The notes: generated by a model not told the origin, from the letters alone. Shown: positions 30,901 through 60,500, numbered from the stretch's first letter. The stretch: DNA of 64,000 nt from Macrostomum lignano (GCA_002269645.1 NIVC01000368.1:248001-312000); one strand, 5' to 3'. A program made the numbers and translations.

Positions 30901-33841
30901 CACCTATACTACTCATCGCAGCATTAAGCTGGGCAACTTTCGATGCGAAAGCGCACTCAGGGTGGTTGAATTTCTGCTGGCTTTGGGAGTTCTTGACGAG
31001 ACTGCGACTGTCGAGGTGAGTAGATTATTATATGGTTGCTATGGTGATTAGGGACGTTTGTTATGTACGTTTAGAACAGGGATTTCTGTGACTTAAAAAC
31101 AATTTTAAGAAACTTGCTTAGGTCATTTGTTTTGAGGATCAGTGACGTACGTATACAGGTGTTTTTATGGGGAAGGATTGCAACCTTCAGGGCCGTAAAT
31201 TGCATGTCTTGGAGTTGACCCTGTCTCTTGGTGGGCGTCCCTGTCTCTTGATGGACGTCCCTGTCTCTTGATGGACGTCCCTGTCTCTTGGTTGGCGCCC
31301 ATGTCTCTTGGTTGGCGCCCCTGTTTCTTGGTGGGCGTCTCTGTCTCTTGGTTGACGCCCCTGTCTCTTGGTGGGCGTCTCTGTCTCTTGCTGGGCGTCC
31401 CTGTCTCTTGGTTGACGCCCCTGTCTCTTGGTGGGCGTCTCTGTCTCTTGGTGGGCGCTCCTGTCTCTTGGTTGGCACCCCTGTCTCTTGATGGGCGCCC
31501 CTGTCTTTTGGTGGTCGTCCCTGTCTCTTGGTTGGCGCCCCTGTCTCTTGGTTGGCGCCCGTGTCTCTTAGTGGGCGTCCCTGTCTCTTAACGGGCGTCC
31601 CTGTCTCTTGGTTGGCCCCCCTGTCTCTTGGTTGGCGCCCGTGTCTCTTGGTTGACGCCCCTCAATACCCGTTTCTACCAGAGCTGTTGTGACACTCGCT
31701 GGTGCTTATATACTGGCTACCGTATTGATAGTAGACGGATATGGTTCACTCGTTCACTCTGTACAAGCTGCTCCGCTCTCACCAGGGTAATGACGCTCTT
31801 GGAAAATAATAATAAAATAAAATAATAAAAATAACAGCACCCTTTGACGTAATCAAGCTTACCGGAAAATAATAACTCGAAATATGAAAAAATCTGTAAA
31901 TTTGAATCAATCTCGTTTTGAATCAAAGTTTGCTTTCTCTCTGCTATTTCAATGTAAATATCTAACTAATTCATCAATTAGTGTTTAATATTTGTATATA
32001 CGAGCAGCTCTGATAGCGCAGCCGATTGACTTATTTCTCTTGTAAAGACAAAGAGCCAGAAAAACCCCACCCCAGCAGCGAATCAAAACCAAGCACGGGG
32101 CAGGGCGCAGCCCACGTGCCTCAACAGGGCCGGTTGCAGCCAGCCAGAGCAGAGCACGGGGCAGACGGACGGCAGGGCAGGGGGACACTAAAGCCCAGCA
32201 GCTATAGGCAGATCCACCATGCACGCCAACCCTAATTTATTGATTTTTTCATCAAGTATTAATCTCCTTAATTGTTCCACCTCGCAGTCGCTCGACTCTT
32301 TGGACACAGCCTGGCATCTGCTGCTGCTGAACCAGTTTCACGACGTCCTACCCGGATCTAGCATTGGTCGCGTGTACGCCGACTCAGCTCGTCACTACAA
32401 TCAAATCCTGTCCGTTTGCAGTCGCTTTCGCTCCATGGACGAAGTCTCGACACCGGCTGCAAGTGTGTCGGAATTTGCTCTCGTAAATCCTACTCAGTGG
32501 TCGATGTCTTTGACGCTTCCTGAAGATCATGGCCGTCGACTTGTGAGTCTGCCGCCTCTCTCAGTTTGCCGACTTGATCAATTGCTACTAAAAGAAGCAA
32601 CACCACCAGAGCCGACAGCAAAACTGCTGGATTCTAAAGTTGTTGTACTTGAGAATGAGCATTTGAAAGCTGAAATCGATTCGTTCGGTCGAGTTGTCTC
32701 TCTGATTAGCAAATCAATTGGCGCCGGCCGAGAATGCCTATTGGCACCTGTCCAATTGACTTATTATCACGATATGCCGTTATTCTGGGACGCCTGGGAC
32801 ATTATGGACTATAGCTGGGAGACTCGAGCCACAGTTGCTGAGGACGCCACTGGCAAGGGTAGACTGATTGAATCGTGTCGAATTGATAGTTCGCACAGCT
32901 GTCAGACTGTCTACGAGCTGACTAGCTATCCCACATCCTCGGATGCTACCGATTCCAACCTTGTGTCCCGGATCGAGCATCAGGTCGCTCTACTGCCAGA
33001 ACGGCCTCACTGTCTGACCTTCTGCACCCGGGTGACGCCCTGGCGAGCCGCTCACACGTTGCTCCGCGTTGAACTGCCCTGCAATGTACGAGGCGTCACC
33101 CGAGCTAGCGCGGAGATTCAAGCCGGCCGAGTTGACCGGCCAACTCGAGGCAACACCAGCTGGGATTGGGCCGCGCACGAGCACTGCTCGCATCGGTACT
33201 TGGATCTGTCCGAGGCCAATTTCGGTTTGGCTACAATAAAACAGGCAATCTACGGCGGTAGCGTACGCGATGGTAGCGTTGTAAACTTGAGTCTGTTGCG
33301 CTCTCCTCGCGGCCCAGATGCTGAAGCGGATTTCAATAGCGAGCACTGCCTGCGCTATGCTCTGATGCCTCATCAAAGCTTGGCTGGCCTGACGGACAGC
33401 TCCAGTTGCCGCAGTCTGGTTGCCACAGCTTGTCAGTTTGGCTATCAATCCGATGTTGAACTGACGCGATTGCGTCTGACAGATCGAACAGCTGTACCGC
33501 TGACAACGAGCCCACTGGTTACCTTTGAACAGCCTGCACCGGGTAGCAGCCAATCTGTAGTGCTAGACTGGATCAAACCGGTCCGCTCTGTTGACAAGTC
33601 CAAGTGGTTTCTAGTTCGTCTGTACGAAAGTGTGGGCGGTTTCGTACCGAATTGTTGCCTGCGAATTTATCTGCCAAGAACTGGTGGTCGATTGACTGCG
33701 GCTTTCGAGTCCAACGCGTTAGAGGAACAGCTGCGACCGCTGAAACTGCAGTCTGCTGCTGATGGCGGGGTTGCTGTTGAACTGCCGGCACCGATTGCGG
33801 CCTATCAGGTGCTGTCCGTGTTGATCTGCTGGACGCTTTGA
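27910..33841 (+). CDS. MAN2C1: Cytosolic alpha-mannosidase 2C1 (GH38), complete
   Basis: Exons 27910..28016, 28102..28242, 28319..29060, 29619..30020, 30638..31015, 32288..33841, phase-consistent. Motifs [57 protein letters not shown] and [15 protein letters not shown]. Confidence 0.95.
29185..29475 (-). mobile_element. CORE-SINE (tRNA head plus MIR-like CORE) in MAN2C1 intron 3
   Basis: The minus strand has B box GGTTCGATTCC, then GTGTCCTTTAAGTAAGACACTTAACTCT...CAGCTGTAAAATGGG, matching the recalled MIR CORE (GTGACCTTGGGCAAGTCACTTAACCTCT...CATCTGTAAAATGGG). Confidence 0.75.
30107..30628. repeat. 26-bp minisatellite in MAN2C1 intron 4
   Basis: Unit AGATGTACACTTATCGATCTGCACTC; ends 9 bp before the acceptor. 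Confidence 0.93.
31218..31662. repeat. 21-bp minisatellite in MAN2C1 intron 5
   Basis: Unit CCCTGTCTCTTGGTGGGCGTC, ~21 copies. Confidence 0.93.
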
Positions 33842-35891: not shown

Positions 35892-38480
35892 TCAAGAGCA
35901 GATTAAGGCCAGCGTCTTACAGCACTCAGACTTCACCTGACTGCAGTAGTAGCTCTTGGTCTCTGCACTCCAAGCCTCAGCGATTTTCTGATAGAAGTTG
36001 TTGCACTGCTCGGCCGAGGCATTGTCGCCGAAAAAGCAGGACATATCGATGACTGGGACCTGCGAGTCGTAGGTACACTGTCCGTTCCAGTTGCAGCTCT
36101 TCTGACTGCCGCATGGGGTGCCGACCGGAGCGCGAAGGCCGCCATATGTCGTCGCCATCGATCCCCCGGTCTTGTAGCAGTACAGTTTGGCGCACATCAA
36201 ATCTGGGTTTTTTCTGAAATGCTCATGCACGTAACATTTGCCAGGACTGAGTGGGTAACTGAGACGGCACACCTGATCGAGGGACATGCGAGCTCCTTCG
36301 CGGACAGAGCCTGTCAGTTGACTGACTGAGGTACCTTGTGGAGACTTCAGACACGCTGCTTTACCTTGTTAAGAGGTATATATAATAAAGTTTACGAGTG
36401 TCAATAAAATAATCTCCTGACCAAAATTGTATAATACCTTTCTCCCCATGCGCGTTTAATCCGATCTCATGCAACCCCGGATATTCAGGTCCTAATTCCC
36501 GATATCACTCATCAGATGACCCACTAGCTGCCACACCACTCCTTTGTCACCTAACCCAACCTAGCTCCGCGCAATTATTTAAAATCACTCAATTGTTGAG
36601 CACGCTTGACGAAACCCATATGCCCGCAGACTATTTTTTCTAGTACCGCGTGAATCCTCGTTTCGATTCCCTCGTAAAGGGGGTGGGGCATTTTACTAAA
36701 CCAATGGTTATAAGCGCCTCGGCGTTATAGCTCGTTTCTGCCCTCTGCAGCCCATCAATATTGGTATAATAGTGCAGATAACTCCATGGCCAGTCCGTGC
36801 AAAAGACAAACAGACGAAATCTAGAATTCCCCGGTGAAATTCCTCGCTCTAGAATTTGTCTTCGCTGCCTATTTATTGGAAAACCTCGCATCGAGTCAAG
36901 AATCTCAGTAGCTATCACTATTGATATACAATTACGAGTACTTAACTATGTACTAACTACGTACTAGGTACTTACTAGTCTAGCCGTAGTATCCTAAAAA
37001 CTTCAAGTCGCAGGCTGGGAATCCCGTCTCATTAGCAGCAGTTTGGTCACTCCACCACGCCACAAGCTACTCAAGTTCCCAACATTAACTGTTTAGGTGG
37101 ATTTTCCTAGGGAATGAGGCCTGCATGGCGGTCGTACATTATTGACACCAAAACCCGAAGTCGGCGCCAACTAGGACAGCGCACAGGTTACAGCACTTAC
37201 AGAAGCACTTACATTGTCCTAATAGACTTTCAATACACTGCTTTACCTACACTCGTATATTCAGCTGGCTATGGGATCCAAAATTACAGTTAGTGACGGA
37301 TTGGTTAATGATCTTCATTGAGTAAGATATATCGACTAGCTGAATCTACAGGCTTCGCAATCTGATTAAAACAAAAATTCAGTTTAAATGCTTACTGGAT
37401 TTGATGTAGCTTTGGATGTGCCTCACTGTGCACGGAGAGAACCGATAGGAATTGGCTACGTTGCTGAGATTGTCGCCGCACCCCAACTGTGGAGGCCCAA
37501 ATCTTCGACAATGCTGACCTTCCACTGTCCGCAGGCGCCCCTTATGTAAGCCATTCCTGCGGGGCCCGAGTTTCCGTCGGCCCCAATGTCCCTGCGCGTG
37601 AAACCCATCACGTGATCGGCCCTGCTACCTTTCGCGTACATGTACGCTATGATGCTGCTGAGAATGGTGATTCCATCTCTTGCTAAAAAGGAGCAGTTTA
37701 AGTAAATGCTTCAACGTTTAAATCCTAATAAGTAACGCTATGAGTAACTTTTTTGTCACTGCATCGCATACCGTCAGCCGAGTTATCCGGTGGCATCCAC
37801 TTTGCATCGGCTTCAGTCTTAGCCAGTGTTAACCCAATGCACCTGACACTGATTGACGGACGGCCGATGTTCCTGAAGATCGTGTCCATGCCAATCACAA
37901 TGTGAGAATAGTAGAAGTGCAGCTCAGTCAACGCTTTGTCGTCAGTACCGAAAATTGTCTTGAAAGTCTTCCAAACGGTGTGATCAATGAGGATGTGGAT
38001 CTCAACTTGATAGTCGGTAGCCTCTCCATTCACTCGACGCTTCTTTCGACTCAGAACGCGCTCGAACTGCGGACCATCTGTCTGCGAGTCAGTTCCGTTG
38101 CTTTTAGAAACGCGGTGCCCGGAGTCGCCGATTGGCTGGATGAAATACAAGGCGTCTTCGTGTGTCACGTGACCGCTGATGCGCTTTACGTCGTTCTCGT
38201 GTCGAACGCTAAGCACAGCTTTGCGATCGATGTTTCTGTAGTGAGCGTGATCTCCGTGTTGGGCTTGTCGGCCAGAGAACGTCCTGGAGACTCCATCGCC
38301 CGTCACAGTGACTACAGCATCATCCAACGGAGCAGTTTTGGTCAGTGGAATGCGGACTTTCTTGGTGGTGTTGGGCAGCTGGAGCTCGATCTCCATGGAT
38401 GATGGGTGAGGTCCGTCACCACTGGATCGCGTCACTGACACCGAGGCCTTGGCCACCGTAAAAGCAATGGACAGCAACAG
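35892..38480 (-). pseudogene. ADAM/ADAMTS-like M12B metalloprotease with the zinc-binding motif deleted and a frameshift; probable pseudogene
   Basis: Exons complement(37772..~38480, 37396..37682, 35892..36364). Signal-like hydrophobic N-terminus, prodomain, furin site RKKRR, VEIHILID, DHVMGFT..DI, GMAYIRGAC..SIVED, then a stop at 37456. FSPC resumes in another frame with no HExxHxxGxxH between. The Cys-rich domain (DQVC...C..LYC...GTPCG..KSC...GQC) follows. Confidence 0.8.
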
Positions 38481-40695: not shown

Positions 40696-43512
40696 TTAGC
40701 GCATGCGCAAATCAGCTTCTTTATAGTTCTTGTCTCCGCCTTTGGCCTGGCGCGGGTGCGGCCGAGCCGCGATCGGCGACTCCACCTCGTCCGAGCTGCC
40801 TGGGATGCCACGCGGCTGCGGCGCCGGCCCGGCTGGCTGGTCTGGTGGTTCTGGCAGCCACTTGACCTGCGTGGCGTGCCTGCGGCAGGTGGTGTCGTCG
40901 CGCTGCATGACCAGCGAGTCGCCGAGCACTTCGGACACGACCCACGGCGTCGACTCGTAGAAGGCGTCGGCCTTTTGTCTGGACTGCAGCCGTCGCAGGA
41001 CGCGGTCTCCTGGCCGAATGTCGTGGTCTGCTGCCTTGGCCCTTTGGTCGGCGTAGTGCTTCATCTTCGCCTTGGACTGCTGGTCCTTGTCCTTGATGGC
41101 TGCTCTCGTCGCGTCCACCGGCTGCGATTGCTGGAGGTTGGGAATCGTGTCGGTGATCTGCCGCCCGAACAGGAGGCTGGCGGGCGCGATCCCAGTAGCG
41201 CTGTGCGGAGTGCGTCTGTACGCGGCCAGGTACTCGTCGATCGCTGCCGTCCAGTCCCTGCCTTCGGCCACGGCCGCACGGATGGCCTTGTTGAGTCCCT
41301 GGTTGCACCTTTCCGTAGCGCCGTTGGCCTGTGGGTACAGCGGAGTGATTCGGTGGTGCCTGGCGCCTTGGTCCGCCAGGAAGCTGCTGAACTCGGCCGA
41401 CGCGTAGGGCGGGCCGTTGTCGGTCGTCACTTTCATCGGCTGCCCGAAGATGCTTAACCAATTCCGCAGCACGCGAATGACTGCGGCGGCGGTGGTGCTG
41501 GACATGACCTCGACCAGTGGGAAGCGCGAGAAGTGATCCGTGCAGACGAGCAGCGACTTGCCGTTGACGGGCCCGAGGAAGTCCATGCCGAGCTCCAGCC
41601 AGGGCGCCGCCGGTAGTTCGGTCGGCTTGAGCGGCGTCCCCTTCGGCGTGGTCTCGCGGGTGCGGGTGCAGATCTGGCAGCTCAGGCAGGCCGCCACGTG
41701 AGACTCGACTGATGCTCGCATGCTGGGCCACCAGACCTTGGCTTGAAGGCGATCCAGCGTCTTTCTGATGCCCTGGTGGCCTTGATGCGCCAGCTGCAGG
41801 CATCGGTAGCGCAGTGCTGTTGGCATGAAGATCTGGCCCTGACGCAGCAGCAGGCCGTCGAGCTCGGACAACTCGTGGGCGACGCCGTGCAGCCCCCTCA
41901 GGTTCGGGTCGCTCTTGTCCCAGCGATGACCGCGGATGCCATGGAGCGCAGCTTGGACTGTGGCATCTTGGTCGGAGGCCGCTTTGATGGTCGCCAGGCT
42001 GATGGACACCGGCGTTGCCGCTTGGACTGCCGTGGCCACGTAGATGGCGTCTTCTTGCTCACCAACGTTGTTGGGTGGCATCGGCAGCGGCTGGCGGCTC
42101 AAAACGTCGGACGGGTTGTTGGCACCGGGCTGGTACACCACCTGGAACACGAGGTCTTGCAGCCGCAGTGCCATTCGCTCGATCCTTGGCGGTGGACGAG
42201 ATCCCGGACTGAACAGCGAGATCAGCGGCTTGTGGTCGGTGATGACCTTGAACTGTCCGCCGCCGCTGAGGTAGTGATGGAATTTCAGTCCGCCGTACTT
42301 CACTGCCAGGGCCTCGCGCTCCGTCTGGGAGTAGCGCTGCTCCGTCGGGCTCAGACTGCGGCTGGCGTAGGCCACCGGCCGTGTCGATCCGTCAGGCTGC
42401 ACCTGGGCCAGGATGGCGCCGACGCCGGTCGGGTTGGCGTCGATGATCAGCTGGGTCTGCAGTTCGCTGTTGAAGAACGCCAGCGCCTGGCTGCTGGAGA
42501 TCGTGCGCTTGATGTCGTTGAAAGTGGCTTCCTGCTGCTCGCCCCAGGTCCACTCGGCGGCTCGCTTCGTCAGCTCCCGCAACGGCCGGGCTCTGTCGGA
42601 CAGGTTGCTGATGAAGCGGGCCACGAAGGTGACGAGGCCCAGGAAGGAGCGGACCTCGGTCGCGTTGGTTGGCCGCTTGAAGCTGCGGACGGCCTCCACC
42701 TTCTCCTTGCTCGGGTGGATGCCGGCGGCCGTGAGGCGCATGGCAAGGAAGTCGACCTCCCGCTGGGCGAATCGACACTTCTTGGCGTTCAGTGTGATGT
42801 TGCTCTCCTTTAGCCGAGCCAGGCAGTCTCGAAGACGCTGATTGTGCTCCTTGATGTCCTTCGCGTACACCAGGATGTCGTCATGCACCCAGCGTACGCC
42901 CGGGAGACCGCTCAGGACGGAGGTCATCACCCGCTGCAGGATCTCCGAGGCGGATGTATAGCCCATGCAGAGACGGCGCAGTCGCAGGAGGCCGATGGGC
43001 GTGGAGAACGTCAGCAGGTCCCTGGACTCCTCGGCGACTTCAATTTGATGGAAGGCTTTGGCGACGTCAAGCTCTGAGAAGTACTCAGACCCGGCCATCT
43101 CATCAGTCACCTCCTCGAATGTCGGGATCGGTTGTTTTTCCGGGACCACGTACATGTACTTGTTGACCTGGCGTAGATCTTGGGTGATGCGCACCTCTCC
43201 CTGCTCGGCCTTCGGGACCGCCACCATCCTGGAGCACCAGGCTGTTGGGCCGTGCATGCGCTCGACGATGCCTTGTGCCAGTTGGTCCTCGAGCTCCTTG
43301 ACAACTGCTGTCCTCAGGTGGACTGGTACGCGGGACGGTGGCTGGCAGACTGGGTTGGCATCTGGCCTCAGCTTGATGGTGACGCTGACTCCCTTGACGC
43401 ATCCGATGCCTTGGAAGCGGTCGCTGAAGCCTGCCAGGATGCTCTGGAGCTGCAGTTGCTTGGGCAGATGACGGTCCTCGCAGTCCGCTGGCTTGGCCAG
43501 GCTGGCCACCAT
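40696..43512 (-). CDS. pol: Gypsy Pol (RT-RNase H-integrase), 938 aa, uninterrupted
   Basis: ORF track and the motifs above; in frame with the gag-PR ORF across a single TAA at 43519-43521. Confidence 0.9.
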   Translation of the reverse strand: MVASLAKPADCEDRHLPKQLQLQSILAGFSDRFQGIGCVKGVSVTIKLRPDANPVCQPPSRVPVHLRTAVVKELEDQLAQGIVERMHGPTAWCSRMVAVPKAEQGEVRITQDLRQVNKYMYVVPEKQPIPTFEEVTDEMAGSEYFSELDVAKAFHQIEVAEESRDLLTFSTPIGLLRLRRLCMGYTSASEILQRVMTSVLSGLPGVRWVHDDILVYAKDIKEHNQRLRDCLARLKESNITLNAKKCRFAQREVDFLAMRLTAAGIHPSKEKVEAVRSFKRPTNATEVRSFLGLVTFVARFISNLSDRARPLRELTKRAAEWTWGEQQEATFNDIKRTISSSQALAFFNSELQTQLIIDANPTGVGAILAQVQPDGSTRPVAYASRSLSPTEQRYSQTEREALAVKYGGLKFHHYLSGGGQFKVITDHKPLISLFSPGSRPPPRIERMALRLQDLVFQVVYQPGANNPSDVLSRQPLPMPPNNVGEQEDAIYVATAVQAATPVSISLATIKAASDQDATVQAALHGIRGHRWDKSDPNLRGLHGVAHELSELDGLLLRQGQIFMPTALRYRCLQLAHQGHQGIRKTLDRLQAKVWWPSMRASVESHVAACLSCQICTRTRETTPKGTPLKPTELPAAPWLELGMDFLGPVNGKSLLVCTDHFSRFPLVEVMSSTTAAAVIRVLRNWLSIFGQPMKVTTDNGPPYASAEFSSFLADQGARHHRITPLYPQANGATERCNQGLNKAIRAAVAEGRDWTAAIDEYLAAYRRTPHSATGIAPASLLFGRQITDTIPNLQQSQPVDATRAAIKDKDQQSKAKMKHYADQRAKAADHDIRPGDRVLRRLQSRQKADAFYESTPWVVSEVLGDSLVMQRDDTTCRRHATQVKWLPEPPDQPAGPAPQPRGIPGSSDEVESPIAARPHPRQAKGGDKNYKEADLRMR

Positions 43513-45452
43513 CGCAGATTATTTTCCGACGTCTGGACCAACCCTCAGCATGCCGAGTTTGGTGCTGGACGCTCTGCCGAGTATCGGAGTGCAGCTGCTG
43601 TTGATGATGATAAAGGTGGCCTCCAACTCGCGGTGGTTTGCACTGACTGGTAGCTTGATCTGGCCCGCCACCTCCAGCGGTTCGCTGGCGCCGAGTGCGA
43701 AGACTCTGGTGTTGGACGGTGTCAGCGGCGTGCCAGGGCGGCAGACTCTGCAGAACGTCGCCTTGTCCAGAACGTTGCAGCTTGCCCCGCTGTCAATAAG
43801 GGTGCGGGTTTGCTGTCCGTTGATGTTGATGCTGAATTTGGCTCCGTCATCTTTGGCGCTGAGGGTGCAGAACACTTTGCTCACCGACTGGTCGGCTGGC
43901 TGATCTTGCTCTGGCTGCAGTGCGTTGATCTTTGAGCGGCCGCTGAGGCAAGCCTTGGCCAGATGATTCATTTTGCCGCAGCTGCTGCACCGCCTGCCTT
44001 GGCGTCCGGGTGATGACGGAATGCTTGAGAGACTAGCTGAGGATGTGCAGCAGTTGAGGTATGCCCACTGTCGAGGCTTGATCAGCGAAACTTGAGAAAT
44101 TCGCACCAGGGTTTTCATAGTCACCTGGTACCACCTGTTGAAGGTCCAGAAGCTCCGTCTCGGTGAAGGCCAGTGACTAACGAAGTCAGAGATGATGCAG
44201 ACACATGTGGTCGACGTGCTGATGAAATTTGGAGGCTTGGCAAGGCTGCAGTGAGGCGCAGTGCTGACTGGGGTGTACTGAATACACTAGCGCTTATGGG
44301 AAAATTCAGACCTTCTAGCAGAATCGTCGAATATCTCGACGGTCCTGAGTGCTGGCGACTTGATTCATGTTTGAGAAGGTGCGCAACTAGAATTTGGTAA
44401 GTGCTCTTGAATTTCGTGCGCCTGTGTTGCTCCAGTTTGGTGCAGCAAAAATTGTCAGTGGGGATTCCCCCATCTTGGTAGTTCAACGGGCGGCAAATGG
44501 CTTGTTGTTCCTTTAAGGACCACTGTAATGCAATTGTTGTACTATAGCGGTCCTTGGCCTTAATTTTGAGCCCAAATGTTGATACCTCTAAAGCAGAAAC
44601 GGACCTTTTGTTGTTGATATTCTTTTTTATTTCTGTAATTCATGATTAGCTTTACCTATGTTACTTACTTACCTACGTAGAAGTCGTTTGTAGCATTTCC
44701 AATCCGGTTCTATAGTGTTGCTAAATATATATACATTTATTTAACAGTTACACTTGTATATAGTACGGTTTAGAAAACAGTATAAATACAATACATGTGC
44801 TCCGAAGCTTTGTCAGGAATTCATAATCAACTTTAATGTACCCCGAGGAGCGCCCCCCTCTCAGCCCCGGCCTGAGCGACATCATTTCGATGGAAGTCAT
44901 TGGTTGCCAGGGGCTAGCGAAATGGGCGATCCTCTCCGCCCACACGCTGTGTCAAGTCAATGGCACTACATGTACTGTATATCCCAGGCAGTACCATATT
45001 CTTTGAGAAATTATTCCCAAAATTATTCAAACAAAAAGACCCAAAACCGATTAAAATTCTGTTTAATCGCCTTTTTGCCACGAGAGCAGTGAAGTAGGGT
45101 CTGTTCTTAAAGGCTCAGACCCACCTCACACTGGCTTACACTGAGCTTAAACTACTTATAAACGAGCACATTTCGACTCATTCAAGGTCTCTTCCTTTCT
45201 TCTCTGTCTCTCTCTGTCTCTCTGTCTCCCTATCTACTCTTCAATAAGCTCAACCAGTCCTGACCTATTGTGCGATGTGCTACGCTTGTGCTGCGCTTTG
45301 CGTTACCACCTACCTTGCAGTGCAGACATTTTATCTTAGCTCCAGCCAATCAGTCATTTATACAGCTCCTTCTCAGTGCAGAATTGCACATTGCAATTGC
45401 TCTTTACTCCAGCCGTCTCTCTCTCCCACTCCTCGCCGCTCTCTTCTCTTAT

Positions 45453-45735: not shown

Positions 45736-48587
45736 ATGGCGACAGCGCATCAAGCTGACAATTATCAACCAGCTGCTGCTGACACTGCTCATGCCGCTGA
45801 GCAAAATGGAGGTCAGCACGCCGATCCAGCTGGTGGCTATGGAGGTGGCGGTAGTGGCGGCACCCAACGGGACAACGCTGGCTCCTCATCCACGGCCAGC
45901 TCGCGGAGCTCCACCAGCAGCGTCAAGAGCGTCTATCTGTACCGAAACGGTGACGTGTTCGCCCCGTCGAAGAAGCTTGTGCTGAACCCGCGCCAAACTC
46001 GCGACTGGGACGTGTTTCTTGAACAGGCAACTCATTCGGTGAATCCTCTGAGAGGTGCCGTGAGAACTGTCGTCACGCCGAGGAGGGGTCGGCGCAAAGT
46101 GGCTGACCTGGACTCTCTCGAGGACAAGGGGCACTATGTGGTCTTGGCTAGAGGCGAGAGGTTCAAGCCGATGCCGTGAGTATAGCTGTGCTGCTCCCGC
46201 ACCTGCTCATTTAGTCAGACACTCACTCCTTCAAGTCAGTCAGTCAGTCAGACACTCACTCCTTCAAGTCAGTCAGTCAGACACTCACTCCTTCAAGTCA
46301 GTCAGTCAGACACTCACTCCTTCAAGTCAGTCAGTCAGTCAGACACTCACTCCTTCAAGTCAGTCAGTCAGTCAGTCAGTCAGTCAGTCAGTCAGTCAGT
46401 CAGTCAGTCAGTCAGTCAGTCAGTCAGTCAGTCAGTCAGTCAGTCAGTCAGTCAGTCAGTCAGTCAGTCAGTCAGTCAGTCAGTCAGTCAGTCAGTCAGT
46501 CAGTCAATCAGTCAGTCAGTCAGTCACTCACTCACTCACTCAAGTCAGTCAGTCAGTCAGTCAATCATACTCAATCGCAGGTACGTACCCGAGGATGAGA
46601 CAGGCGCAGGTCACGGCGGTCCGGAGACGGCGCGGGACCACTCGCCAACAGGCGTCAGCCCTCGCCGCAATCTGGCTAACAACAGAGTCGTACTGGAGCC
46701 GGTAAGAAATTGACTGCACTATATAAATTTGCTGTTTAAAGCTTCCATATATCTCTGCTATTCATTCCCCCAGATTCGACCAGTTTTTCACAACAGAAAG
46801 CTGATGTCAACCCAGGCCCGATTCAATGCTCAAATAGACGTTATCAGTACTCAGTCTAAGTCTATCCGGTAAGTACTGAAAATCACCTTATGTGGCAATA
46901 GAATCACGACAATCGTATTGTATTAAATCCGGAAAATTCGCGATTTTCTACTATTCAGAGTCTACCGAAATGGTGACGAGTTCACCCCGGCTATTGTCGT
47001 ACTGCTCAAGCCCAGCGAGCAGGCTTCCATTGATTCCGTGCTCAAAGCTGTCGAAGAGCGAGTAGTGCTACCATCGAATCGAGCAATTAGAAAGTGAGCA
47101 CCTTTGAGTACCTCAGATCAGTGTGTATAGGAAAATCAGTTTTAGAGTGTAGCTAAAAGTCACTGAACTAAACCATTCAGACTCTACGACATCAGCGGCC
47201 GGCGTATTTGGAAGCCGGAGTACATCGAGCACGAGAAGTATTACGTGGCGGCTGGTCACGAGCCGTTTCTGAGCCGGCCTTACGGGCAGAAACTGCCAGT
47301 GCTGATTGTTGGCAAGGCTGATCGCAGGTGAGATTGAGTTTTGTGATTTTCCTGCAACGGTTCTATGAAAAACACTTTGGGAACAATGAAAAACACATCC
47401 CACGCACATACCAGATCCCAAACACATCTCAGATCCCACCACCCATAGATCCCACCCATCTATCAGATCCCACCATCGATCAGATCCCAATCACACATCA
47501 GATCCCACCCATCCATTAACTTCCACCCACACATCAGATCCCACCCACACATCAGATCCCACCCACACATCAGATCCCACCCATCCATCAGATCCCACCC
47601 ACCCATCAACTCCCACCTACCCATCAGATCCCACCCACACATCAGATCCAACCCACTCATAGATCCCACCCATCCATCAACTCCCACCTACCCATCAGAT
47701 CCCACCCACACATCAGATCCAACCCACTCATAGATCCCACCCACCCATCAACTCCCACCTACCCATCAGATCCCACCCACACATCAGATCCAACCCACTC
47801 ATAGATCCCACCCATCCATCAACTCCCACCCATCCATCAGATCCCACCCACACATCAGATCCAACCCACTCATAGATCCCACCCATCCATCAACTCCCAC
47901 CCATCCATCAGATCCCACCCACACATCAGATCCAACCCACTCATAGATCCCACCCATCCATCAACTCCCACCTACCCATCAGATCCCACCCACTCATAGA
48001 TCCCACCCACCCATCAACTCCCACCTACCCATCAGATCCAACCCACTCATAGATCCCACCCATCCATCAACTCCCACCTACCCATCAGATCCCACCCACT
48101 CATAGATCCCACCCACCCATCAACTCCCACCTACCCATCAGATCCCACCCACACATCAGATCCAACCCACTCATAGATCCCACCCATCCATCAACTCCCA
48201 CCCATCCATCAGATCCCACCACCTTAAATGCACAACTGCAAGCTGGTTATTGTATACTAATAAAATTTATGTCTGTTAATCGGATGTCTGACGTTCACAA
48301 TTTGTAAAACTCTCGTGAACATTTATTCACCGCCACGTCCAGTCAGTATTCAAGTAAGTACCTGAGAAGATGGCAGATGAAACTGCTCAACATTAGCAGT
48401 CCGCTTACAGATCTCAGCTGTATAAATGCGTGAGTGGTAGTCGAATAGCTAAATAGGCAATTCGTCTACAAAAACATATCTTAGTGAGACCTCGGTTAGA
48501 TATTTATTGCATATTATATCATCAAATTCACTGTCTGGTACAGCAGGGCTATTCATTTATGCTGGCTAGTTAGTCCTTATCTGTTTA

Positions 48588-48646
<59 letters not shown>

Positions 48647-48681
48647 TTCTGTCTGTCTGTCTGTCTGTCTGTCTGTCAGAG

Positions 48682-48728
<47 letters not shown>

Positions 48729-49707
48729 TGTGTTGTGTTGTGTTCTGAAAAAAACGTCATGCACACGGAGGCTGTATGACCTAAGATTTTGCACTGAAAC
48801 CTTTATTATTTTGCACTGACTTAGTATGAAGCGGAGTACAATGAGAAGCCATCAGATATTCAAGATTAACCTTGATTGCCTTGGTTGCCCCCTGGTGGGC
48901 AGTCAATGAATTATTAATTTTCATGCGAACTTGCATCTCCCGTGCAGCTCTGGTCTGCTAGGGACATTATTTATGCTTTTACGACTTCGTACGTAAGCTT
49001 GACCCAGTTGGCGTTGCCATGGTTGCGAAAAAGCACGCGCTTCAATGTTTTGTATATAAAGTTGTTAATTTCATTGCATGGTTTCTATGAAGATGTTAAT
49101 GAAATTTAACCCACCCCCTGCTGTGTTTAAAAAAATATTGCTACAGCGAAATTCACGCTTGGTAAAGGAAATTTCGTACTTCATCTTTACTTGGCTTTAA
49201 AAGTAGTGCTTGCATTTTTTTAAATTTTTAAAAATGTTTTTTTCATCTTCCTCAAAGACCTCGACGTCAGAAACTATATGTTAGAAGCCTGCCTTCAACA
49301 TCATGCATTACTAACAGTAGCTAGTTGCCAACTGGCTTGTTTTTCGTACTTTCGTGCATGGTATTATGCATTTTACTAAAACATTTCGAACTGTTACGTT
49401 AAAATACTAATTCATGGATAATTACATAATTTTCGATGTTCTCAACAACACCGCGCAGGTCCACTATCAAGTACTTGGCTCAGCCAATCACACCTGCCAA
49501 GGATTCTTCAAGAAGGTAAGAGTTACACAAGGACGTTGGTAACCAACAAGTTTTGAAATGTATGAAGATCTTAAACTAAGAATTCTGTGGCTTCAAAATA
49601 GTTAAAGTAGCTATAACGAACATACATACTTTGAATTCTTAGCTCATTGCTTCGGCATCTTACAAAAAACATATTTTAGACCAAAGGACAATCAACAACA
49701 ACAACAA

Positions 49708-49738
<31 letters not shown>

Positions 49739-50798
49739 CAGCGAAGCAACAACAGTCTCAAGCTAAAAAGCCAACTAAGGTAATCAAAAACCGTTTACTT
49801 GATTGTAGTACTGAGTGTACATTTTTAACGCTGAGCAAGGGGCGAATTCAGTAGCTCAGTTGTGCTCAAGTTGTCTAACTGTCGCACCAGTGTATAAGCT
49901 TTGAGTTGGAATCCGTGCACGGCATGAATTATTTTCATTAATTTCGGGCAGGGCACGAGCAAATTCGCCTTGTGCACGTCTTGTGCACGTCTCAGGACAT
50001 GAGCGAATCGGGCCATGACTGCGTCATACTTCAGTTCCTGTTATTTTTCGTAAAGTTGAAGAGGTCGACTCAATCTTTATTCAAATACCGACTCGCAGAG
50101 TTCGAACAATTTCCAAGCATTTGACGACGATTCAACCGGCAATGAATCAGATGCTGATGCTGAGCAGCGATCAGCATCTCATGTTGACCTGCGGCTTCAT
50201 CATGATGATGAGGCTGAATCGCACTCACATTGGCCCAACAATGATCAGGTCTTGCTATTGTATTTTAGCCTTGTTGTGGCTCTTTCCGTATCTAGAAGCG
50301 AACAAATTAGCATTTTTGTTCACCACTTTGACACTAATTTAAAGTTGATTTTTTTACCAAACTATTGAATATAAGTCGAAATGAAATTTCCTTAGATTTG
50401 TTGTTCTATCGTAGACATGCCAAGTTATCGTTTCTTATGTAGCATGATCACTCAAAATGCACTTAAATTACATATCATAATCGTTGTTGTGCATTGATGT
50501 CGCACTCAAATGTCATGGCAACAAAACGTTACTCACCCATAGCACGAAATAAAAGCTGTTAAATATCCTCACCTCAGGCTGAGAAAGAGCAGGCCGCTAG
50601 CCAGATACAATCGAGTGTCAAAGGCTTCAAGACTAGGAAGACCGCTGCCGAGAAGCAGACTGCTCAACCCGTGCAGATCCAGTCGGATAAAAACAATTCG
50701 AAGGCTAATCAGCCCCCAAAGAAGCCGCAGCAGCAGAAGCAGCAACAGCAACAGCAGCAGCAGCAACAGCAGCAGCAGAAGCAGCAACAGTCGCAACC

Positions 50799-50835
<37 letters not shown>

Positions 50836-51002
50836 CAGAAGCCAGTCCAGGCAGCCAGCACAGGGGAAAAGGACAAAGCTGCCACAACAATCCAGAGCAG
50901 CATTCGAGGCTTCGATACAAGAAAGGCCGCGGCTCAGAAGGTGACCCAAAGACCGGTGGAAGTGAAGCCAGACCAGAGCAACTCCAAGGCCAACAAGCAG
51001 CC

Positions 51003-51046
<44 letters not shown>

Positions 51047-51516
51047 ACAGCGGCAATGATAAAGACAAAGCTGCCACCACTATTCAGAGCAGCGTAAAAG
51101 GCTACCAAGCTAGAAAATCTGCCGCTGAAAAAGTTGGCGCCAACGATGGCAAGCAGCAACAACAGCAGAAGCAACAGCAACAGCAGAAGCAGCAGTCAAC
51201 GCCGCAAGAGTTGGACAAGGCCGCCACAACGATTCAGTCGGCTTACAAGGGGCATCAGACTAGGAAGCAGGCTGTAGCAAAATCTGCCGCTAAGACGCCT
51301 CAACAGCAGCAGCAGCAGCAACCCCAGCAGCAGCAAGGAGCCACAGCCAAGCCCGAAAAGACGCCGTCAGAAGCGGCCGCCGCTGGCAACATTCAAGCCG
51401 CGGTGAACAGCTACAAGACTAGGAAGGACGCCGCCAAGTCTGAGGCCTCCAAACAGCAGGCGACGACTTCTGGTGCAAATCAGCCGTCTCAGCAGCAGCA
51501 GCCGCCGCCGAACTAA
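45736..51516 (+). CDS. DCDC2-like tandem doublecortin-domain protein with polyQ tracts and five IQ-like motifs
   Basis: Exons 45736..46175, 46581..46701, 46774..46868, 46959..47093, 47181..47327, 49459..49515, 49680..49779, 50578..51516, phase-consistent. DCX1 is KSVYLYRNGD...GAVR..VTP...YVV..GERFK. Linker IRPVFHNR. DCX2 is RVYRNGD...RKLYDISG...YVAAGHEPF. IQ-like motifs follow AAxxIQxxx(R/K)Gxx(T/A)RK. Confidence 0.85.
46210..46565. repeat. (TCAG)n microsatellite with larger compound units, DCX gene intron 1
   Basis: Direct reading; ends ~15 bp before the acceptor. Confidence 0.95.
47405..48220. repeat. 17-18-bp minisatellite with ~71-bp higher-order structure
   Basis: Monomers ATCAGATCCCACCCACAC, ATCAGATCCAACCCACTC, ATAGATCCCACCCATCC and ATCAACTCCCACCTACCC recur in order. 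Confidence 0.85.
48575..48740. repeat. (CTGT)n microsatellite
   Basis: Direct reading. Confidence 0.95.
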
Positions 51517-51819
51517 CGGTCTGAATTATTTAAAGCGTAGCTACCGTAGCTCGTACTTGGCAAGCAGCTCCCGGTTACTGGTAGTAACAGTTGCTAGGAG
51601 GAATTGAAACCCCAAACTAACAAAGATTAAAAAATATTTAACGCTGATTTTCGCGCTTACATGGTTAACTGAATTACTTTAATTAATCACGCTTTTCTCA
51701 CTTAAATTTTCTCACTAATTTTGCTTGCTGTATATTGCTGATTAATATTTAATTTGACTCAATAAGCTAAATAAGATTTTGAGTAGCTAATCTTGATTCT
51801 CTATACTTCCATTACTTCC

Positions 51820-53700
51820 TAACCTATCTACGTCCATAGTTCTACTTAACCAACCACTTCCTGACTCTGCCTACCCAATCTACCCAACCACTTCCTGACT
51901 CTGCCTACCCAATCTACCCCAACACTTCCTGATTCTGTCTACCCAATCTACCCAACCACTTCCTGACTCTGCCTACCCAATCTACCCCAACACTTCCTGA
52001 TTCTGTCTACCCAATCTACCCAACCACTTCCTGACTCTGCCTACCCAATCTACCCCAACACTTCCTGATTCTGTCTACCCAATCTACCCAACCACTTTCT
52101 GACTCTACCTACCCAATCTACCCGACCACTTTCTGACTCTACCTACCCAATCTACCCGACCACTTTCTGACTCTACCTACCCAATCTACCCGACCACTTC
52201 CCGACTCTACCTACCCAATCTACCCGACTCTGCCTACCCAATCTACCCGACTCTGCCTACCCAATCTACCCAACCACTTCCTGACTCTGCCTACCCAATC
52301 TACCCCAACACTTCCTGATTCTGTCTACCCAATCTACCCCAACACTTCCTGATTCTGTCTACCCAATCTACCCCAACACTTCCTGACTCTGCCTACCCAA
52401 TATACCCCAACACTTCCTGATTCTGTCTACCCAATCTACCCCAACCACTTCCTAACTCTGTCTACCCAATCTACCCAACCACTTCCTGACTCTGCCTACC
52501 CAATCTACCCAACCACTTCCTGACTCTGCCTACCCAATCTACCCCAACACTTCCTGACTCTGCTTACCCAATCTACCCCAACACTTCCTGATTCTGTCTA
52601 CCCAATCTACCCCAACACTTCCTGATTCTGTCTACCCAATCTACCCCAACACTTCCTGATTCTGTCTACCCAATCTACCCCAACACTTCCTGATTCTGTC
52701 TACCCAATCTACCCCAACACTTCCTGATTCTGTCTACCCAATCTACCCCAACACTTCCTGATTCTGTCTACCCAATATACCCCAACCACTTCCTAACTCT
52801 GTCTACCCAATCTACCCGACTCTGCCTACCCAATCTACCCGACTCTGCCTACCCAATCTAAACCAACACTTCCTGATTCTGTCTACCCAATCAACCCCAA
52901 CCACTTCCTAACTCTGTCTACCCAATCTACCCGACTCTGTCTACCCAATCTACCCGATTGGGTAGATCTAACCACTTTCTGACTCTACCTACCCAATCGA
53001 CCCAACCACTTCTCGACTCTACCTACCCAATCTACCTGACCACTTCCCGACTCTACCTACCCAATCTACCCGACTCTGCCTACCCAATCTACCCGACTCT
53101 GCCTACCCAATCTACCCGACTCTGCCTACCCAATCTACCCCAACACTTCCCAATATACCCCAACCACTTCCTAACTCTGTCTACCCCAATCTACCCGACT
53201 CTGCCTACCCAATCTAAACCAACACTTCCTGATTCTGTCTACCCAATCAACCCCAACCACTTCCTAACTCTGTCTACCCAATCTACCCGACTCTGTCTAC
53301 CCAATCTACCCGACTCTGCCTACCCAATCTACCCAACCACTTTCTGACTCTACCTACCCAATCGACCCAACCACTTCTCGACTCTACCTACCCAATCTAC
53401 CTGACCACTTCCCGACTCTACCTACCCAATCTACCCGACTCTGCCTACCCAATCTACCCGACTCTGCCTACCCAATCTACCCGACTCTGCCTACCCAATC
53501 TACCCCAACACTTCCTGATTCTGTCTACCCAATCTACCCCAACCACTTCCTAACTCTGTCTACCCCAATCTACCCGACTCTGCCTACCCAATTTACCCAA
53601 CCACTTTCTGACTCTACCTACCCAATCGACCCAACCACTTCTCGACTCTGCCTACCCAATCTACCCAACCACTTCCCGACTCTACCTACCCAATTAACCT
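51820..53700. repeat. Mixed 23/34-bp minisatellite
   Basis: Units ACCCAATCTACCCAACCACTTCCTGACTCTGCCT and ACCCAATCTACCCGACTCTGCCT are interspersed. Confidence 0.92.
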
Positions 53701-53862
53701 ACTAATCTAATACTTCATAGCTTCACTTGCATCAATCTTTCCATTCTAGAAGCATATCTAAGCCGCCTTTATCCAAGAAACCTCTTTCTCAGCTAATCAA
53801 ACAATCCTATTCAATTAGTTTAGACCTCTCGCACAGCGTTTGTTGCTAAATTGGCCATGCAG

Positions 53863-54869
53863 TGCAAATTTCTAACGCCTCGCACTTACAGCGCGCAACC
53901 AATAGCAACGCCGCACTAACCAACGGCGATGGCTCTGGTCAAGGTGGCAACGCCACTTACAGAGCTCCGCTGGCATCACCGCCGCCTCAACAACGCAATG
54001 ATTTGTCGTCACCAACTAACCAAGACGCTAATCTGATAAATGGCCAACACGCTAACGATAGTCGCTTTGATTTTAACCAAGATGATGATTATAATGCGGT
54101 AATTATATTTTAGGGATAAATTATAGCTAATTATATCGATTACCTATATGCTTATGTAGTGCGCCGTCAGATTATTGATTTAGCTCGTATAGTCTAAGAC
54201 TTTAATAATTATGGCTTAGTTATTTTTAGCCTAATTGGACCTTTACGTAACCATATTGTACCTACTCGTAACTGACTGTACCTACTCGTAACTCGATTGT
54301 ACCTACTCGTAACCTGATTGTATCTACTCGTAAACTGAGTGTACCTACTCGCAACTTGATTGCACCTACTCGTAACCTGATTGTACTTACTCGTAACCTG
54401 AGTGTACCTAATCGTAACTTGATTGTACCTACTCGAAACTTGATTTTACATTATCTACTCGTAACCTGAGTGTACCTACTCGTAACCTGAGTGTACCTAC
54501 TCGTAACCTGAGTGTACCTACTCGTAACCTGGGTGTACCTACTCGTAACCTGAGTGTACCTACTCGTAACCTGAGTGTACCTACGATCGTAACTAAGTAC
54601 CCTAGATACCAGCTACAAAGAAATCGAGTTCATAGGTACTGTAGGCCGTGTAATACGCATTTACCTGTAAGAATTAGCTATAGAACAGCTGACAGAACAG
54701 TAATGATCAATTTAAGCTAAATAAAAAAAATTATTGCATTCTCATCCCACAGCAGGCAGACTTTGACTATGTGCACCATCAAGCGGCCACTAAGATCCAA
54801 GCTAATTATCGCGGCTACATCACCCGGAAGCACCTGGCAACGAATAGCAATTCTAATAACTCTACATAA
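53863..54869 (+). CDS. Two further exons ending in a canonical IQ motif; probably an alternative 3' end of the DCX-IQ gene
   Basis: Exons 53863..54098 (AG acceptor, GT donor) and 54753..54869 encode ..DDDYNA|QADFDYVHHQAATKIQANYRGYITRKHL..stop. The upstream join is uncertain. Confidence 0.6.
54230..54590. repeat. 21-bp minisatellite
   Basis: Unit GTAACCTGAGTGTACCTACTC. Confidence 0.9.
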
Positions 54870-57569: not shown

Positions 57570-60500
57570 TTAATCCACCCGTTTTCTTTGCTGCTGCTGT
57601 TGCTCTTTCAGTGCAGTCGCGACAGCCGATGGCAGATCCAGCTGATCCTCGTCAATGATAGACAGCTGCCGCCCGATGCCGAGCTCGCTGTTGATGACGC
57701 CGACAGAGGCTGAGCGCTCCTGATGGCTTGCGCCCACCGGCGACTCGGAGTCATCCGGGCTCATGTCGATCTCGCGGACGTCGCTGGAGGATCGCGGCCT
57801 CAGCTGCTCAATGTCAAGCGTCAGAAGGTGCTTGCCAGAGCAGCAGCTATCGGCTTTCCCAGCGCGATCCTTGGTGGCAAGATCTGGCGACAAACTTTGC
57901 CTCTGCTGCTGCTCCTGCTGCTGAACTCGCTGCTTAATTGGCTGCTTTGATCTTGATGGCGAAGACATGTTCATGTCTAGAAACTTATTCGGCAGCTGAA
58001 GCTGCTGATATTGATTTGGGCCCTGCGGTTGCTGCTGCTGTTGCCTTGGCGACAGCGGCCGGTTAATGCGCTGGCCTCGCTTACCGATGGAACCAACGCC
58101 CGGGTCGATGACAACGCTGACGCCCTCCATGGTGTGAAGCGTCGGCGACAGTGGCGGCGAGAATGGCGCGTTGACTTTCACGATGTAGCTGAGATCGGCG
58201 TCGTCGTCTTCGATGGCCTCAAGAATTCGGTCGGACGCGGCGAGCTGCTTCTGCTGCTGCTTGGCCGCCTGGCCGGGGCGCCGGCGGTGCTGCCAAGGAA
58301 TTCGTTGGATTGCTTGCCAATTGAAGCAGTTGGTAACAGAACAGCTTTTTATGGTTAAGTGTTACTTTAAGTTTAGAATTGTTACATTTGAGTTTTACTT
58401 CAAGGATGCATGCATATACACGGTTAACAAAATTGTTTTAATGCCGTAAGTAGTGTAGTAAGAACATGCGTATTTAAATCTAAAAAGCAGAAAGTGAATC
58501 ACTATTGAGTAAATGCGCAAGCGTGAACCAACCAATTAAAATGTCATTCCACAACGTCTCTGATCGTGACCTGGGATTGTCAATCGAAAGCAAAACAATA
58601 AGTTTTTTTAGTTGTAACCGTATCTACGTACTTCAAGAAAATCATCATTCAAAGAATTAAGAATAAGGTAGAAATCAGCTCGAGTATTTATTAGTTCTAA
58701 AAAACTTGTTTCAGCTTATCTTCTCACCTGGCCAATGCTACTTCCGCTGATGCCGCTTCCCGCAGCGGCACCAACCGTCATCAGCGATGCCGTTCGTCGC
58801 TTAGCCCTGGCACTTTCGCCTCTGCTAGTCGCAGCGGTAGCCGGCGACAGCGACAAACGCTGCCGATGCTTGCGATGTCGAACAACGTCCTCAGTTGACA
58901 ACGCCGCCGCGCCGTCTGACTCGTCGTCGCCTTCATCCTCATCTACGTCGTCTCCAGTTGCATCGTCGGCATCGTCGTCGTCTTCGTAGTCGTCGTCGTC
59001 GTCGTCGTCAAGGAGATCTGTTTTGGCGTCGTCCTCGTTCTCATCCTCCTCGTTGATGTCCTCGCAGTTAGAGCTTTCGATGCCAGCCTTGCTGGCCGAC
59101 GCGCTGATGGGGACGTCTTTTCCAGATCCACCGGATCGACGCCGGGCCGGCTGCTGCTGCTGCTGGTGCCGCTGCCGCTGCTGTTCGCGCATCTGCATTC
59201 GCTGCATTTTGCTCATCAGCCTTCTGTGCGTGTTGGTCCGGGGACTGTTGGCGGCCACGGTCATTGCCAGCTTGCATTTTAGCTTCTCCTGGAAGCGCTG
59301 CTGCGACTGGCGTAGACTGTCGAGCCAAGCAAGCTGCATGGTTGATGCATTTGACGTGGGTGGAATTTAGCTGCGCCCTCAATGGCAAATAAGGACACGT
59401 AAAAAGAGTCTTTTAAAGTGACCCCATGAGAAAGATGCTGAGGTCAAAGGTAGCAACCGGATCAGAATGTAAAAAGTACAGAAGCGGGCTTCGTGCTGAT
59501 AAAGATTCCTCCTTATTAGAAGCAGGGGGTTGTGTGCACCCTGGTACACTTAAGCGACACTGTCACACAACCGGCGAGAGGCATCACTGCCCGTTCCGCC
59601 GACTCCTCTGAGCAGGCACACAAGCGCGCGGATACGTACGCAGTCATACGCACAGGCACAAACTCACACAGGAGTGTACAGCGGCCCTAAATTTATTTAT
59701 CGTTAGGCATGTACACTTCATTGTGCCTTGGGGGGTTGGCCCTCAAGCTGGGAGTTAATTGCCGGGAATTTGCTGCGAGTTCAAGCTGGGATGTGACTGC
59801 ACTTGGAATCGAGCCTGGGCCTCTGGCACATCAGAGCGCCTTTCTAGACCACTGGGCTACGGCCTCTCTTAACTATTGCTGTGCGTACAGTGCACATGTA
59901 TCTATAATTAACATTTCGATAGTTGAGTCAAAATAAAACTAACAAACCTCTTTCCCATCCGCATATATTCCTCAGAATACGACCATAAAATATGTACGTA
60001 AGGAAAGGATGATGATGCGGAAACTGCACTATTCCAAAACTTCTCTGCCGCAAGAAAGTCGGACAACACAATCGTGTCCACAGGCGCAAAGTTTTACCTT
60101 CTGCTGATCTCCGGCCGACTGGAGAGTGTAAACTCCGATGATCTGTTGAAATCGGCTGATATGGATGAGCACAAATGCGTGCTTGAGACCGTTGGCTGAA
60201 AAGTTTTTAAAGCAAAATGTGTTTGCTACAAACTGTCAAAAATAACTATTTATGCAAAGCTAGGTACTTCATTGCGAGCACGTCACGAGTTCTTTACCAA
60301 ACCGAGTAAGTCAAAAGCCATGAACCCTTGTAATTCTTCATGAGTCTGTGCTTGTGTCAAATCATGCAGTTCTCAAGGAGCCCTGTACATGTAGTACTTT
60401 CGCAGAAACTTCTTTGCTGCCTCGACAAAATCTATTTCCCATTACTCGTATGTAATTCTCTACAATTCGTGTCACGAACCAACACGGCTTCTACCATAAG

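Follow-up and report, generated by a model that had tools for sequence, protein, structure and literature searches.

Does a microtubule-binding protein of the doublecortin type carry an array of calmodulin-binding motifs in its tail, and is such a protein an invention of one flatworm lineage? The question is raised by positions 45736-54869 of a 64,000-nucleotide stretch of Macrostomum lignano DNA (GCA_002269645.1, NIVC01000368.1:248001-312000; the whole stretch is referred to here as the window), where a first-pass annotation had proposed a tandem-doublecortin (DCX) protein fused to IQ motifs spaced by polyglutamine (polyQ) tracts. We find that this interval holds a single multi-exon gene on the plus strand, encoding two DCX domains followed by a tail with an IQ array. 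Taken as a whole, the evidence is best explained by one gene for a divergent microtubule-associated protein of the DCDC2 family that probably combines its DCX pair with a calmodulin-holding IQ tail.

The exons were mapped using two public M. lignano proteins, BOX15_Mlig018380g2 (GenBank, P0168) and A0A1I8ID92 (UniProt, P0003; "Doublecortin domain-containing protein"), which were placed on both the window and the M. lignano locus L001 (NIVC01000387.1). This gave a total of 8 or 10 exons, depending on the isoform, and a protein of 677 residues in the short form or about 771-780 residues in the long form (Table 1). Canonical GT-AG sites and matching phases were found at each junction from exon 1 through exon 8, the IQ exon, and over the same span the exon order and junction phases of L001 equal those of the window, the junction between exons 6 and 7 being a tentative exception. 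The junction at 49779/50578, at which the first-pass annotation had joined the DCX exons in phase to the IQ exon, is indeed a phase 0 GT-AG junction (AAG/gtaatc ... cag/GCT); it reads TK/AEK and falls at the same place and in the same phase in the M. lignano orthologue. The earlier gene extent, from the ATG at 45736 to a final stop ending at 54869, also agrees with our model, but the earlier list of junctions was incomplete and lacked exons 2, 3 and 6. An early model of ours, in which exon 1 was spliced straight to the DCX2 exon, kept the frame by coincidence, and comparison with M. lignano exposed the two linker exons and the 57-nucleotide exon that it had skipped; a frame-1 reading of exon 2 was rejected on the same comparison. 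Exon 6 is in phase 2 on both entry and exit and hence could be a cassette exon.

Repeat-rich introns of 2.1 kb and 0.8 kb separate the DCX exons from the IQ exon, as they might if the two parts were neighbouring genes fused by prediction only. We regard this as highly improbable. Exons 6-8 are free of Met codons, so the IQ array cannot be a protein of its own starting there, and all phases match. Furthermore, the junction is conserved in M. lignano, where P0168 and P0003 both join DCX exons to IQ exons, and the same DCX-IQ fusion is present in at least six phyla.

By sequence comparison, the window gene is the orthologue of M. lignano Mlig018380. P0168 aligned with the window protein at 4e-175 by BLASTP, with 71% identity over the DCX pair, and P0003 ranked third when the DCX1 part of exon 1 was searched exhaustively with HMMER (half of the query). 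A word-index homologue search with the early spliced DCX pair returned nothing, not even the M. lignano orthologue that the exhaustive search picks up. The two genes share the same start, and they correspond one to one in IQ units 1, 2 and 5 and in the terminal IQ exon. They differ in that the window protein has two extra IQ units (3 and 4) and polyQ spacers produced by expansion of CAG and CAA, whereas the M. lignano spacers are rich in Lys, Ala and Pro; the M. lignano gene has one 3' exon more, and its donor after the IQ exon is different. Synonymous sites are saturated between the two genes, with a proportion of synonymous differences (pS) of 0.49-0.82 across the DCX, IQ and terminal-IQ blocks, against 0.09-0.28 for nonsynonymous differences (pN). 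The window gene and Mlig018380 thus belong to different species or are deep paralogues. Within this range, pN was 0.15-0.19 in the DCX blocks, 0.21-0.28 in IQ blocks 1, 2 and 5, and 0.10 in the terminal IQ exon. Such low values next to saturated pS mark the IQ units and the terminal exon as coding sequence kept by purifying selection, which also acts on the DCX blocks.

The public models of the M. lignano locus (L001 10001-16146) conflict with each other. P0168 stops in the IQ exon. P0003 is without the N-terminus and reaches the terminal IQ exons by way of an odd exon, LHVLSPLFNIC, with which part of the IQ array is skipped. The full major isoform is probably represented by neither model.

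What kind of DCX protein is this? The first-pass annotation had read two DCX domains of the DCDC2 type in one gene, and this assignment is borne out. Pfam DCX (PF03607) matches the spliced protein in two stretches (1.9e-26). Among structures in the PDB, the DCX, DCLK and DCDC2 domains all match the DCX pair, the best sequence match being 2dnf, a DCX domain of human DCDC2 (3.2e-08, query residues 88-169), with DCX at 1.3e-06. Outside M. lignano the pair is 30-36% identical to DCDC2-type proteins across animals (human DCDC2 31%, 2e-28; fish DCDC2C 34%, 9e-31) and 26% identical to RP1, and its bit scores are 85-125 for DCDC2 family members versus 54 for RP1. Its named top matches are all DCDC2-like, and the best matches of the M. 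lignano orthologue outside flatworms are all DCDC2. A profile of the IQ-bearing homologues described below likewise matched vertebrate DCDC2 at about 1e-100 and RP1 at 1e-27. The linker exon may also resemble that of DCDC2, as had been claimed: against the consensus PVxHSRxxxSARxxK of 75 homologues, the window sequence RPVFHNRKLMSTQARF keeps a recognisable P, V, H, R, S and ARF and carries a two-residue insertion. Vertebrate DCDC2 (DCDC2A) and DCDC2C have the same tandem DCX pair and possibly the same type of linker. They are free of IQ motifs, however (DCX is the only Pfam entry, and a regular expression search finds none), and the vertebrate DCDC2 tail is acidic where that of the window protein is basic and Gln-rich.

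The IQ motifs of the tail were then assessed by profile, by pattern and by structure match. Pfam IQ (PF00612) matches the open reading frame (ORF) at 50563-51513 in 4 stretches (2.4e-21) and the ORF at 54693-54866 (2.9e-07). A hidden Markov model scan of the spliced protein, which the first-pass annotation had put forward as a check, gave IQ at 9.6e-26 alongside the DCX match. Translating 50578-51513 yields all five IQ-like strings that this annotation had quoted, with their polyQ spacers, and the sixth, GAP-43/neurogranin-like motif sits in a downstream exon as proposed. The strict pattern [FILV]Qxxx[RK]Gxxx[RK] fits four of the five internal motifs as well as the terminal one. The IQ exon is 31% Gln, has a net charge of +26 over 312 residues and few hydrophobic residues, and contains no Met; in 20,000 shuffles preserving this composition the strict pattern occurred on average 0.0046 times, and never twice or more, compared with 4 occurrences in the exon itself. 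The array is therefore no by-product of a Gln/Lys-rich composition. The IQ units of exon 8 share just 60-73% DNA identity with one another, indicating old duplications.

The terminal IQ motif has the closest structural precedent. Its sequence, AATKIQANYRGYITRK, is identical in 15 of 18 residues to AATKIQASFRGHITRK, the neuromodulin IQ motif crystallised with calmodulin (PDB 4e53), and on the strength of this match calmodulin binding by the terminal IQ is plausible. Against the PDB, the IQ motifs score best with the IQ repeats of the axonemal radial-spoke protein RSP23 (1.5e-08), which the terminal exon also matches, and with CFAP91 (3.4e-04); Sp17 and FAP305 are likewise among the closest matches. 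The likeness of the window protein to neuromodulin (GAP-43), neurogranin, RSP23, CFAP91 and Sp17 is confined to the IQ motif of about 20 residues; these proteins have no DCX domain and no homology to the window protein outside the motif.

Several observations weigh against a DCDC2-family protein with a calmodulin-holding tail encoded by this gene. Neither the window protein nor either M. lignano model contains the mid-tail motif of DCDC2, GVFKA...(D/E)T.V(D/E)LPIDQ..AE. Of the five internal IQ motifs, three have Lys at the consensus Arg position, one has Asn-Ser where Arg/Lys-Gly is expected, and the hydrophobic residue at the distal end of a full IQ is absent throughout, while in M. lignano P0168 the three internal IQ-like motifs went uncalled by Pfam IQ at E<=0.001. 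At the 3' end, the phase 0 donor that follows the M. lignano IQ exon (CAG/gtggcc) is not conserved in the window, the sole donors available there after the IQ exon being a weak GT and a GC. Literature searches for Macrostomum returned no expression, localisation or binding report on this gene.

The missing mid-tail motif bears on the family assignment. It is present in DCDC2 of human, lamprey, sea cucumber, sea urchin and acorn worm, and six IQ-bearing homologues have it too, namely those of Tubulanus and Owenia and four others. To our knowledge it has no assigned function. Because it is missing here, we describe the window protein, on the combined domain and tail sequence, as a divergent DCDC2-family member and not as a plain DCDC2 orthologue. 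The form GVFKA...DT.V.LPIDQ..AE is shared by homologues from human to nemertean and annelid (P0016, P0063, P0002, P0041, P0050 and P0110 compared) and has been lost in both Macrostomum-type proteins.

The departures from the full IQ consensus could mean that the tail is a basic, disordered extension that binds or bundles microtubules, its IQ-likeness being a by-product of basic amphipathic repeats that leave calmodulin unbound. The charge, Gln content and scarcity of hydrophobic residues in the tail exon would suit such a role, as would the fact that the internal motifs escape Pfam in the M. lignano orthologue. We nevertheless consider it unlikely, since the I-Q, G and R/K positions are kept between the window and M. 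lignano while the spacers have been replaced, Pfam IQ matches the IQ exon, the terminal IQ shares most of its positions with a motif crystallised on calmodulin, and homologues in other phyla have up to 17 canonical IQs. A further alternative accepts the IQ motifs and changes their partner: they could recruit EF-hand proteins other than calmodulin, such as centrin, calmodulin-like light chains or axonemal Ca2+ sensors, making the protein a structural adaptor and not a Ca2+/calmodulin switch. IQ motifs are known to bind myosin light chains and other calmodulin-like proteins as well as calmodulin, and the nearest PDB matches of the motifs here come from axonemal complexes. At the level of sequence such partners would be indistinguishable from calmodulin, but among single motifs whose partner has been solved the nearest, that of 4e53, is bound to calmodulin, and we judge this alternative distinctly unlikely.

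Does the sixth IQ motif belong to the protein at all? The IQ exon carries an in-frame TAA at its end, and a short isoform without the sixth IQ is possible from the sequence. Two in-frame routes would lead to a long form: from the weak GT donor at about 51472 to the upstream acceptor of exon 9 (GT-AG, phase 1), or from the GC donor at about 51474 to the acceptor homologous to that of M. lignano (GC-AG, phase 0). Correspondingly, P0168 terminates in its IQ exon and P0003 splices onward to the exons with the terminal IQ. The stop codon, the ending of P0168 and the lack of a counterpart to the M. lignano donor would all be expected if only the short form were made, with the downstream GAP-43-like exon belonging to another transcript or being a relic. 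We think this quite unlikely, because the terminal exon is open and 83% identical to its M. lignano counterpart, with pN far below pS (Table 1), because P0003 links this exon to the IQ exon and both splice routes are available in the window, and because a single C-terminal IQ is the commonest form in other phyla.

The first-pass annotation knew of no DCDC2-type protein with this architecture. This does not hold. From 1.84 billion proteins clustered at 50% identity we examined the 150 best representatives obtained with the DCX1 part of exon 1 as query, and found Pfam IQ behind the DCX pair in 12 of these nearest DCX-pair representatives and the strict IQ pattern in 13, spread over at least six phyla. 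Besides Macrostomum lignano (flatworm), DCX-DCX-IQ proteins occur in the nemertean Tubulanus polymorphus (XP_074657000, annotated DCDC2C-like), the annelid Owenia fusiformis (CAH1774299), the gastropod Lymnaea stagnalis (CAL1538719, with 17 IQs), the rotifer Adineta vaga (UJR16130) and the tunicate Styela clava (XP_039253834, annotated DCDC2-like). The mid-tail motif is kept in the Tubulanus and Owenia proteins, and those of Lymnaea, Adineta and Styela are without it; its retention in six IQ-bearing proteins ties the group to DCDC2 proper. Contigs from transcripts or metagenomes supply six further IQ-bearing representatives, of which one has nine IQs. A profile search with the 13 IQ-bearing proteins returned mostly vertebrate DCDC2, with Adineta ricciae as the sole addition. 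No IQ motifs were found in vertebrate, echinoderm or hemichordate members by Pfam annotation and regular expression.

Most of these IQ-bearing homologues have just one AAxKIQxxYRGxxxRK motif, placed right at the C-terminus and equivalent to the terminal-exon IQ of the window gene. The proteins of Tubulanus, Owenia, Lymnaea, Adineta and Styela have a DCX pair 30-36% identical to that of the window followed by one to seventeen such motifs; unlike the window protein, none has polyQ spacers (Q content 3-9%). Public databases already annotate the M. lignano orthologue as DCX+IQ. The architecture is thus common and annotated, and in our literature searches we found no description of DCX or DCDC2 with IQ, the other returns being unrelated co-mentions; a survey of the DCX superfamily mentions neither IQ nor calmodulin (PMC1550402). 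Judged by these homologues, the window gene is a lineage-expanded, polyQ-spaced member of an existing, database-annotated and unstudied invertebrate group of DCDC2-like proteins with IQ tails, and not a unique invention. We tentatively hypothesize that a C-terminal IQ was ancestral in bilaterian DCDC2 as a microtubule-anchored calmodulin tether, was lost in vertebrates and ambulacrarians, and was amplified independently in Macrostomum (5-6), Lymnaea (17) and another lineage (9), with the arrays storing apo-calmodulin on ciliary or flagellar microtubules for release by Ca2+. We regard this scenario as possible rather than probable.

How might such a protein work? Tandem DCX domains bind and stabilise microtubules, as in DCX, DCLK and DCDC2, and DCDC2 itself, whose gene is implicated in ciliopathy and deafness, is a microtubule-binding protein located in primary cilia and kinocilia. 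In the calmodulin-holding reading that we favour, the DCX pair would anchor the protein to the microtubule lattice and a flexible tail would project off it, bearing five internal IQ helices and one terminal helix. The tail is likely to be extended because it is basic, Gln-rich and poor in hydrophobic residues. Each IQ helix may be occupied by a single molecule of calmodulin or of a calmodulin-like EF-hand protein, which would probably be free of Ca2+, as with neuromodulin and neurogranin. The outcome could be a local store of apo-calmodulin on microtubules, or a Ca2+-sensitive switch of the protein's own microtubule binding. By analogy the protein may plausibly act in cilia or flagella, because DCDC2 is ciliary, DCDC2C has been studied in human spermatozoa (PMC13515645) and the look-alikes of the IQ motifs are axonemal; DCDC2A is also among the proteins of invertebrate ciliomes (10.1101/153437).

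Table 1. Exons and IQ motifs of the DCX-IQ gene in window coordinates; a slash marks an exon boundary.
Feature	Position	Strand	Content	Boundaries and evidence
Exon 1	45736..46175	+	Start codon, low-complexity N-terminus, DCX domain 1	Ends in phase 2 (CC/gtgagt); Pfam DCX 4.4e-13; MATA... start aligns with MATD... of P0168; pN 0.15 vs pS 0.66
Exon 2	46581..46701	+	First linker exon, YVPEDETGAG...NNRVVLEP	ag/G...CCG/gtaaga; collinear with M. lignano YVPEAEVGAN...SNRVLLEP
Exon 3	46774..46868	+	Second linker exon, IRPVFHNRKLMSTQARFNAQIDVISTQSKSIR; candidate DCDC2-type linker motif	ag/ATT...CG/gtaagt; 68% identity to M. lignano exon
Exon 4	46959..47093	+	DCX domain 2, first half (VYRNGDEFTPAIVV...)	Splice sites and phase; PDB 2dnf match
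Exon 5	47181..47327	+	DCX domain 2, second half (LYDISGRRIW...GHEPFLSRPYGQKLP...)	Pfam DCX 4e-06, profile positions 31-60; 71% identity to M. lignano
Exon 6	49459..49515	+	57 nucleotides, STIKYLAQPITPAKDSSR; candidate cassette exon	ag/GTCC...AG/gtaaga; 83% identity to M. lignano; pN 0.09 vs pS 0.73
Exon 7	49680..49779	+	PolyQ exon, PKDNQ17PAKQQQSQAKKPTK	ag/A CCA ... AAG/gtaatc; collinear with M. lignano exon ending ...ATK
Exon 8	50578..51516	+	IQ-array exon, 312 codons and TAA stop (51514-51516)	Collinear with M. lignano IQ exon
IQ-like motif 1	50593..50640	+	AASQIQSSVKGFKTRK	Orthologous to M. lignano AAGQIQASIRGFETRK
IQ-like motif 2	50878..50925	+	AATTIQSSIRGFDTRK	Orthologous to M. lignano AAGTIQSSVKGFEARK
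IQ-like motif 3	51070..51117	+	AATTIQSSVKGYQARK	Extra unit, M. lignano counterpart absent
IQ-like motif 4	51220..51267	+	AATTIQSAYKGHQTRK	Extra unit, M. lignano counterpart absent
IQ-like motif 5	51379..51426	+	AAGNIQAAVNSYKTRK; degenerate, N-S replaces R/K-G	Orthologous to M. lignano AAKSIQASVNSYKTRK; pN 0.21 vs pS 0.59
Exon 9 (probable)	53892..54098	+	RATNSNAALTNGDGSGQGGNATYRA...DDDYNA	Acceptor ttacag/CGC (phase 0, homologous to M. lignano), donor GCG/gtaatt; open frame; weak collinearity with M. lignano exon ALSNSNSPVTSHAGPGQQQHNHATTYRA; both acceptor routes in frame
Exon 9, alternative acceptor	53863	+		gcag/TG, phase 1
Exon 10 (terminal)	54753..54869	+	QADFDYVHHQAATKIQANYRGYITRKHLATNSNSNNST and stop; IQ motif 6	83% identity to M. 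lignano exon; pN 0.10 vs pS 0.73
IQ motif 6 (GAP-43-like)	54783..54830	+	In terminal exon	Pfam IQ

The window has the character of an animal-type genome: its introns are of the GT-AG kind, and it contains retroelements and numerous tandem arrays. The introns of the DCX-IQ gene are themselves full of such arrays: (AGTC)x82 at 46234-46567, an array of about 0.8 kb with 18-, 53- and 71-nucleotide periods at 47397-48220, (TCTG)x37 at 48580-48728, a 1.8-kb satellite of 34- and 102-nucleotide units with a strong C-over-G skew at 51850-53694, and a 21-nucleotide array at 54246-54593. Several of them form long open frames that could mislead exon finding. On the minus strand, a Ty3/gypsy-type retroelement at 40696-44124 has an uninterrupted 938-residue pol ORF (reverse transcriptase, RNase H, and integrase zinc-binding and core domains) and a separate 201-residue ORF that matches an aspartyl protease; the end of the element is some 1.6 kb upstream of the DCX-IQ start codon. 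A second retroelement integrase fragment lies at 17731-18477 (plus strand; rve core domain, 6.7e-09). Elsewhere in the window are the exons of a GH38 alpha-mannosidase gene at 28578-33841 (plus strand), one of which is an uninterrupted 540-residue exon with Glyco_hydro_38C and Alpha-mann_mid, an ORF matching ADAMTS cysteine-rich domain 2 at 35892-36287 (minus strand, 3.3e-07), and a 250-residue ORF without a Pfam match at 37725-38477 (minus strand). Two more ORFs without a Pfam match, at 57570-59339 and 10225-10824 (both minus strand), contain low-complexity runs of polyQ and of acidic residues. Coding sequence in this genome seems to be generally given to polyQ tracts, which would not be special to the IQ tail.

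On its own the locus is of modest interest, as an expanded copy of an architecture that is annotated yet unstudied. DCDC2, in turn, is a human ciliopathy and deafness gene and a dyslexia candidate, and the control of its microtubule binding is poorly understood. The IQ endings of many invertebrate DCDC2-type proteins suggest a Ca2+/calmodulin input that is absent from vertebrates, and the multi-IQ arrays would represent lineages in which the IQ has been multiplied. Macrostomum lignano is a laboratory flatworm with RNA interference and transgenesis, so that this calmodulin input would be testable there.

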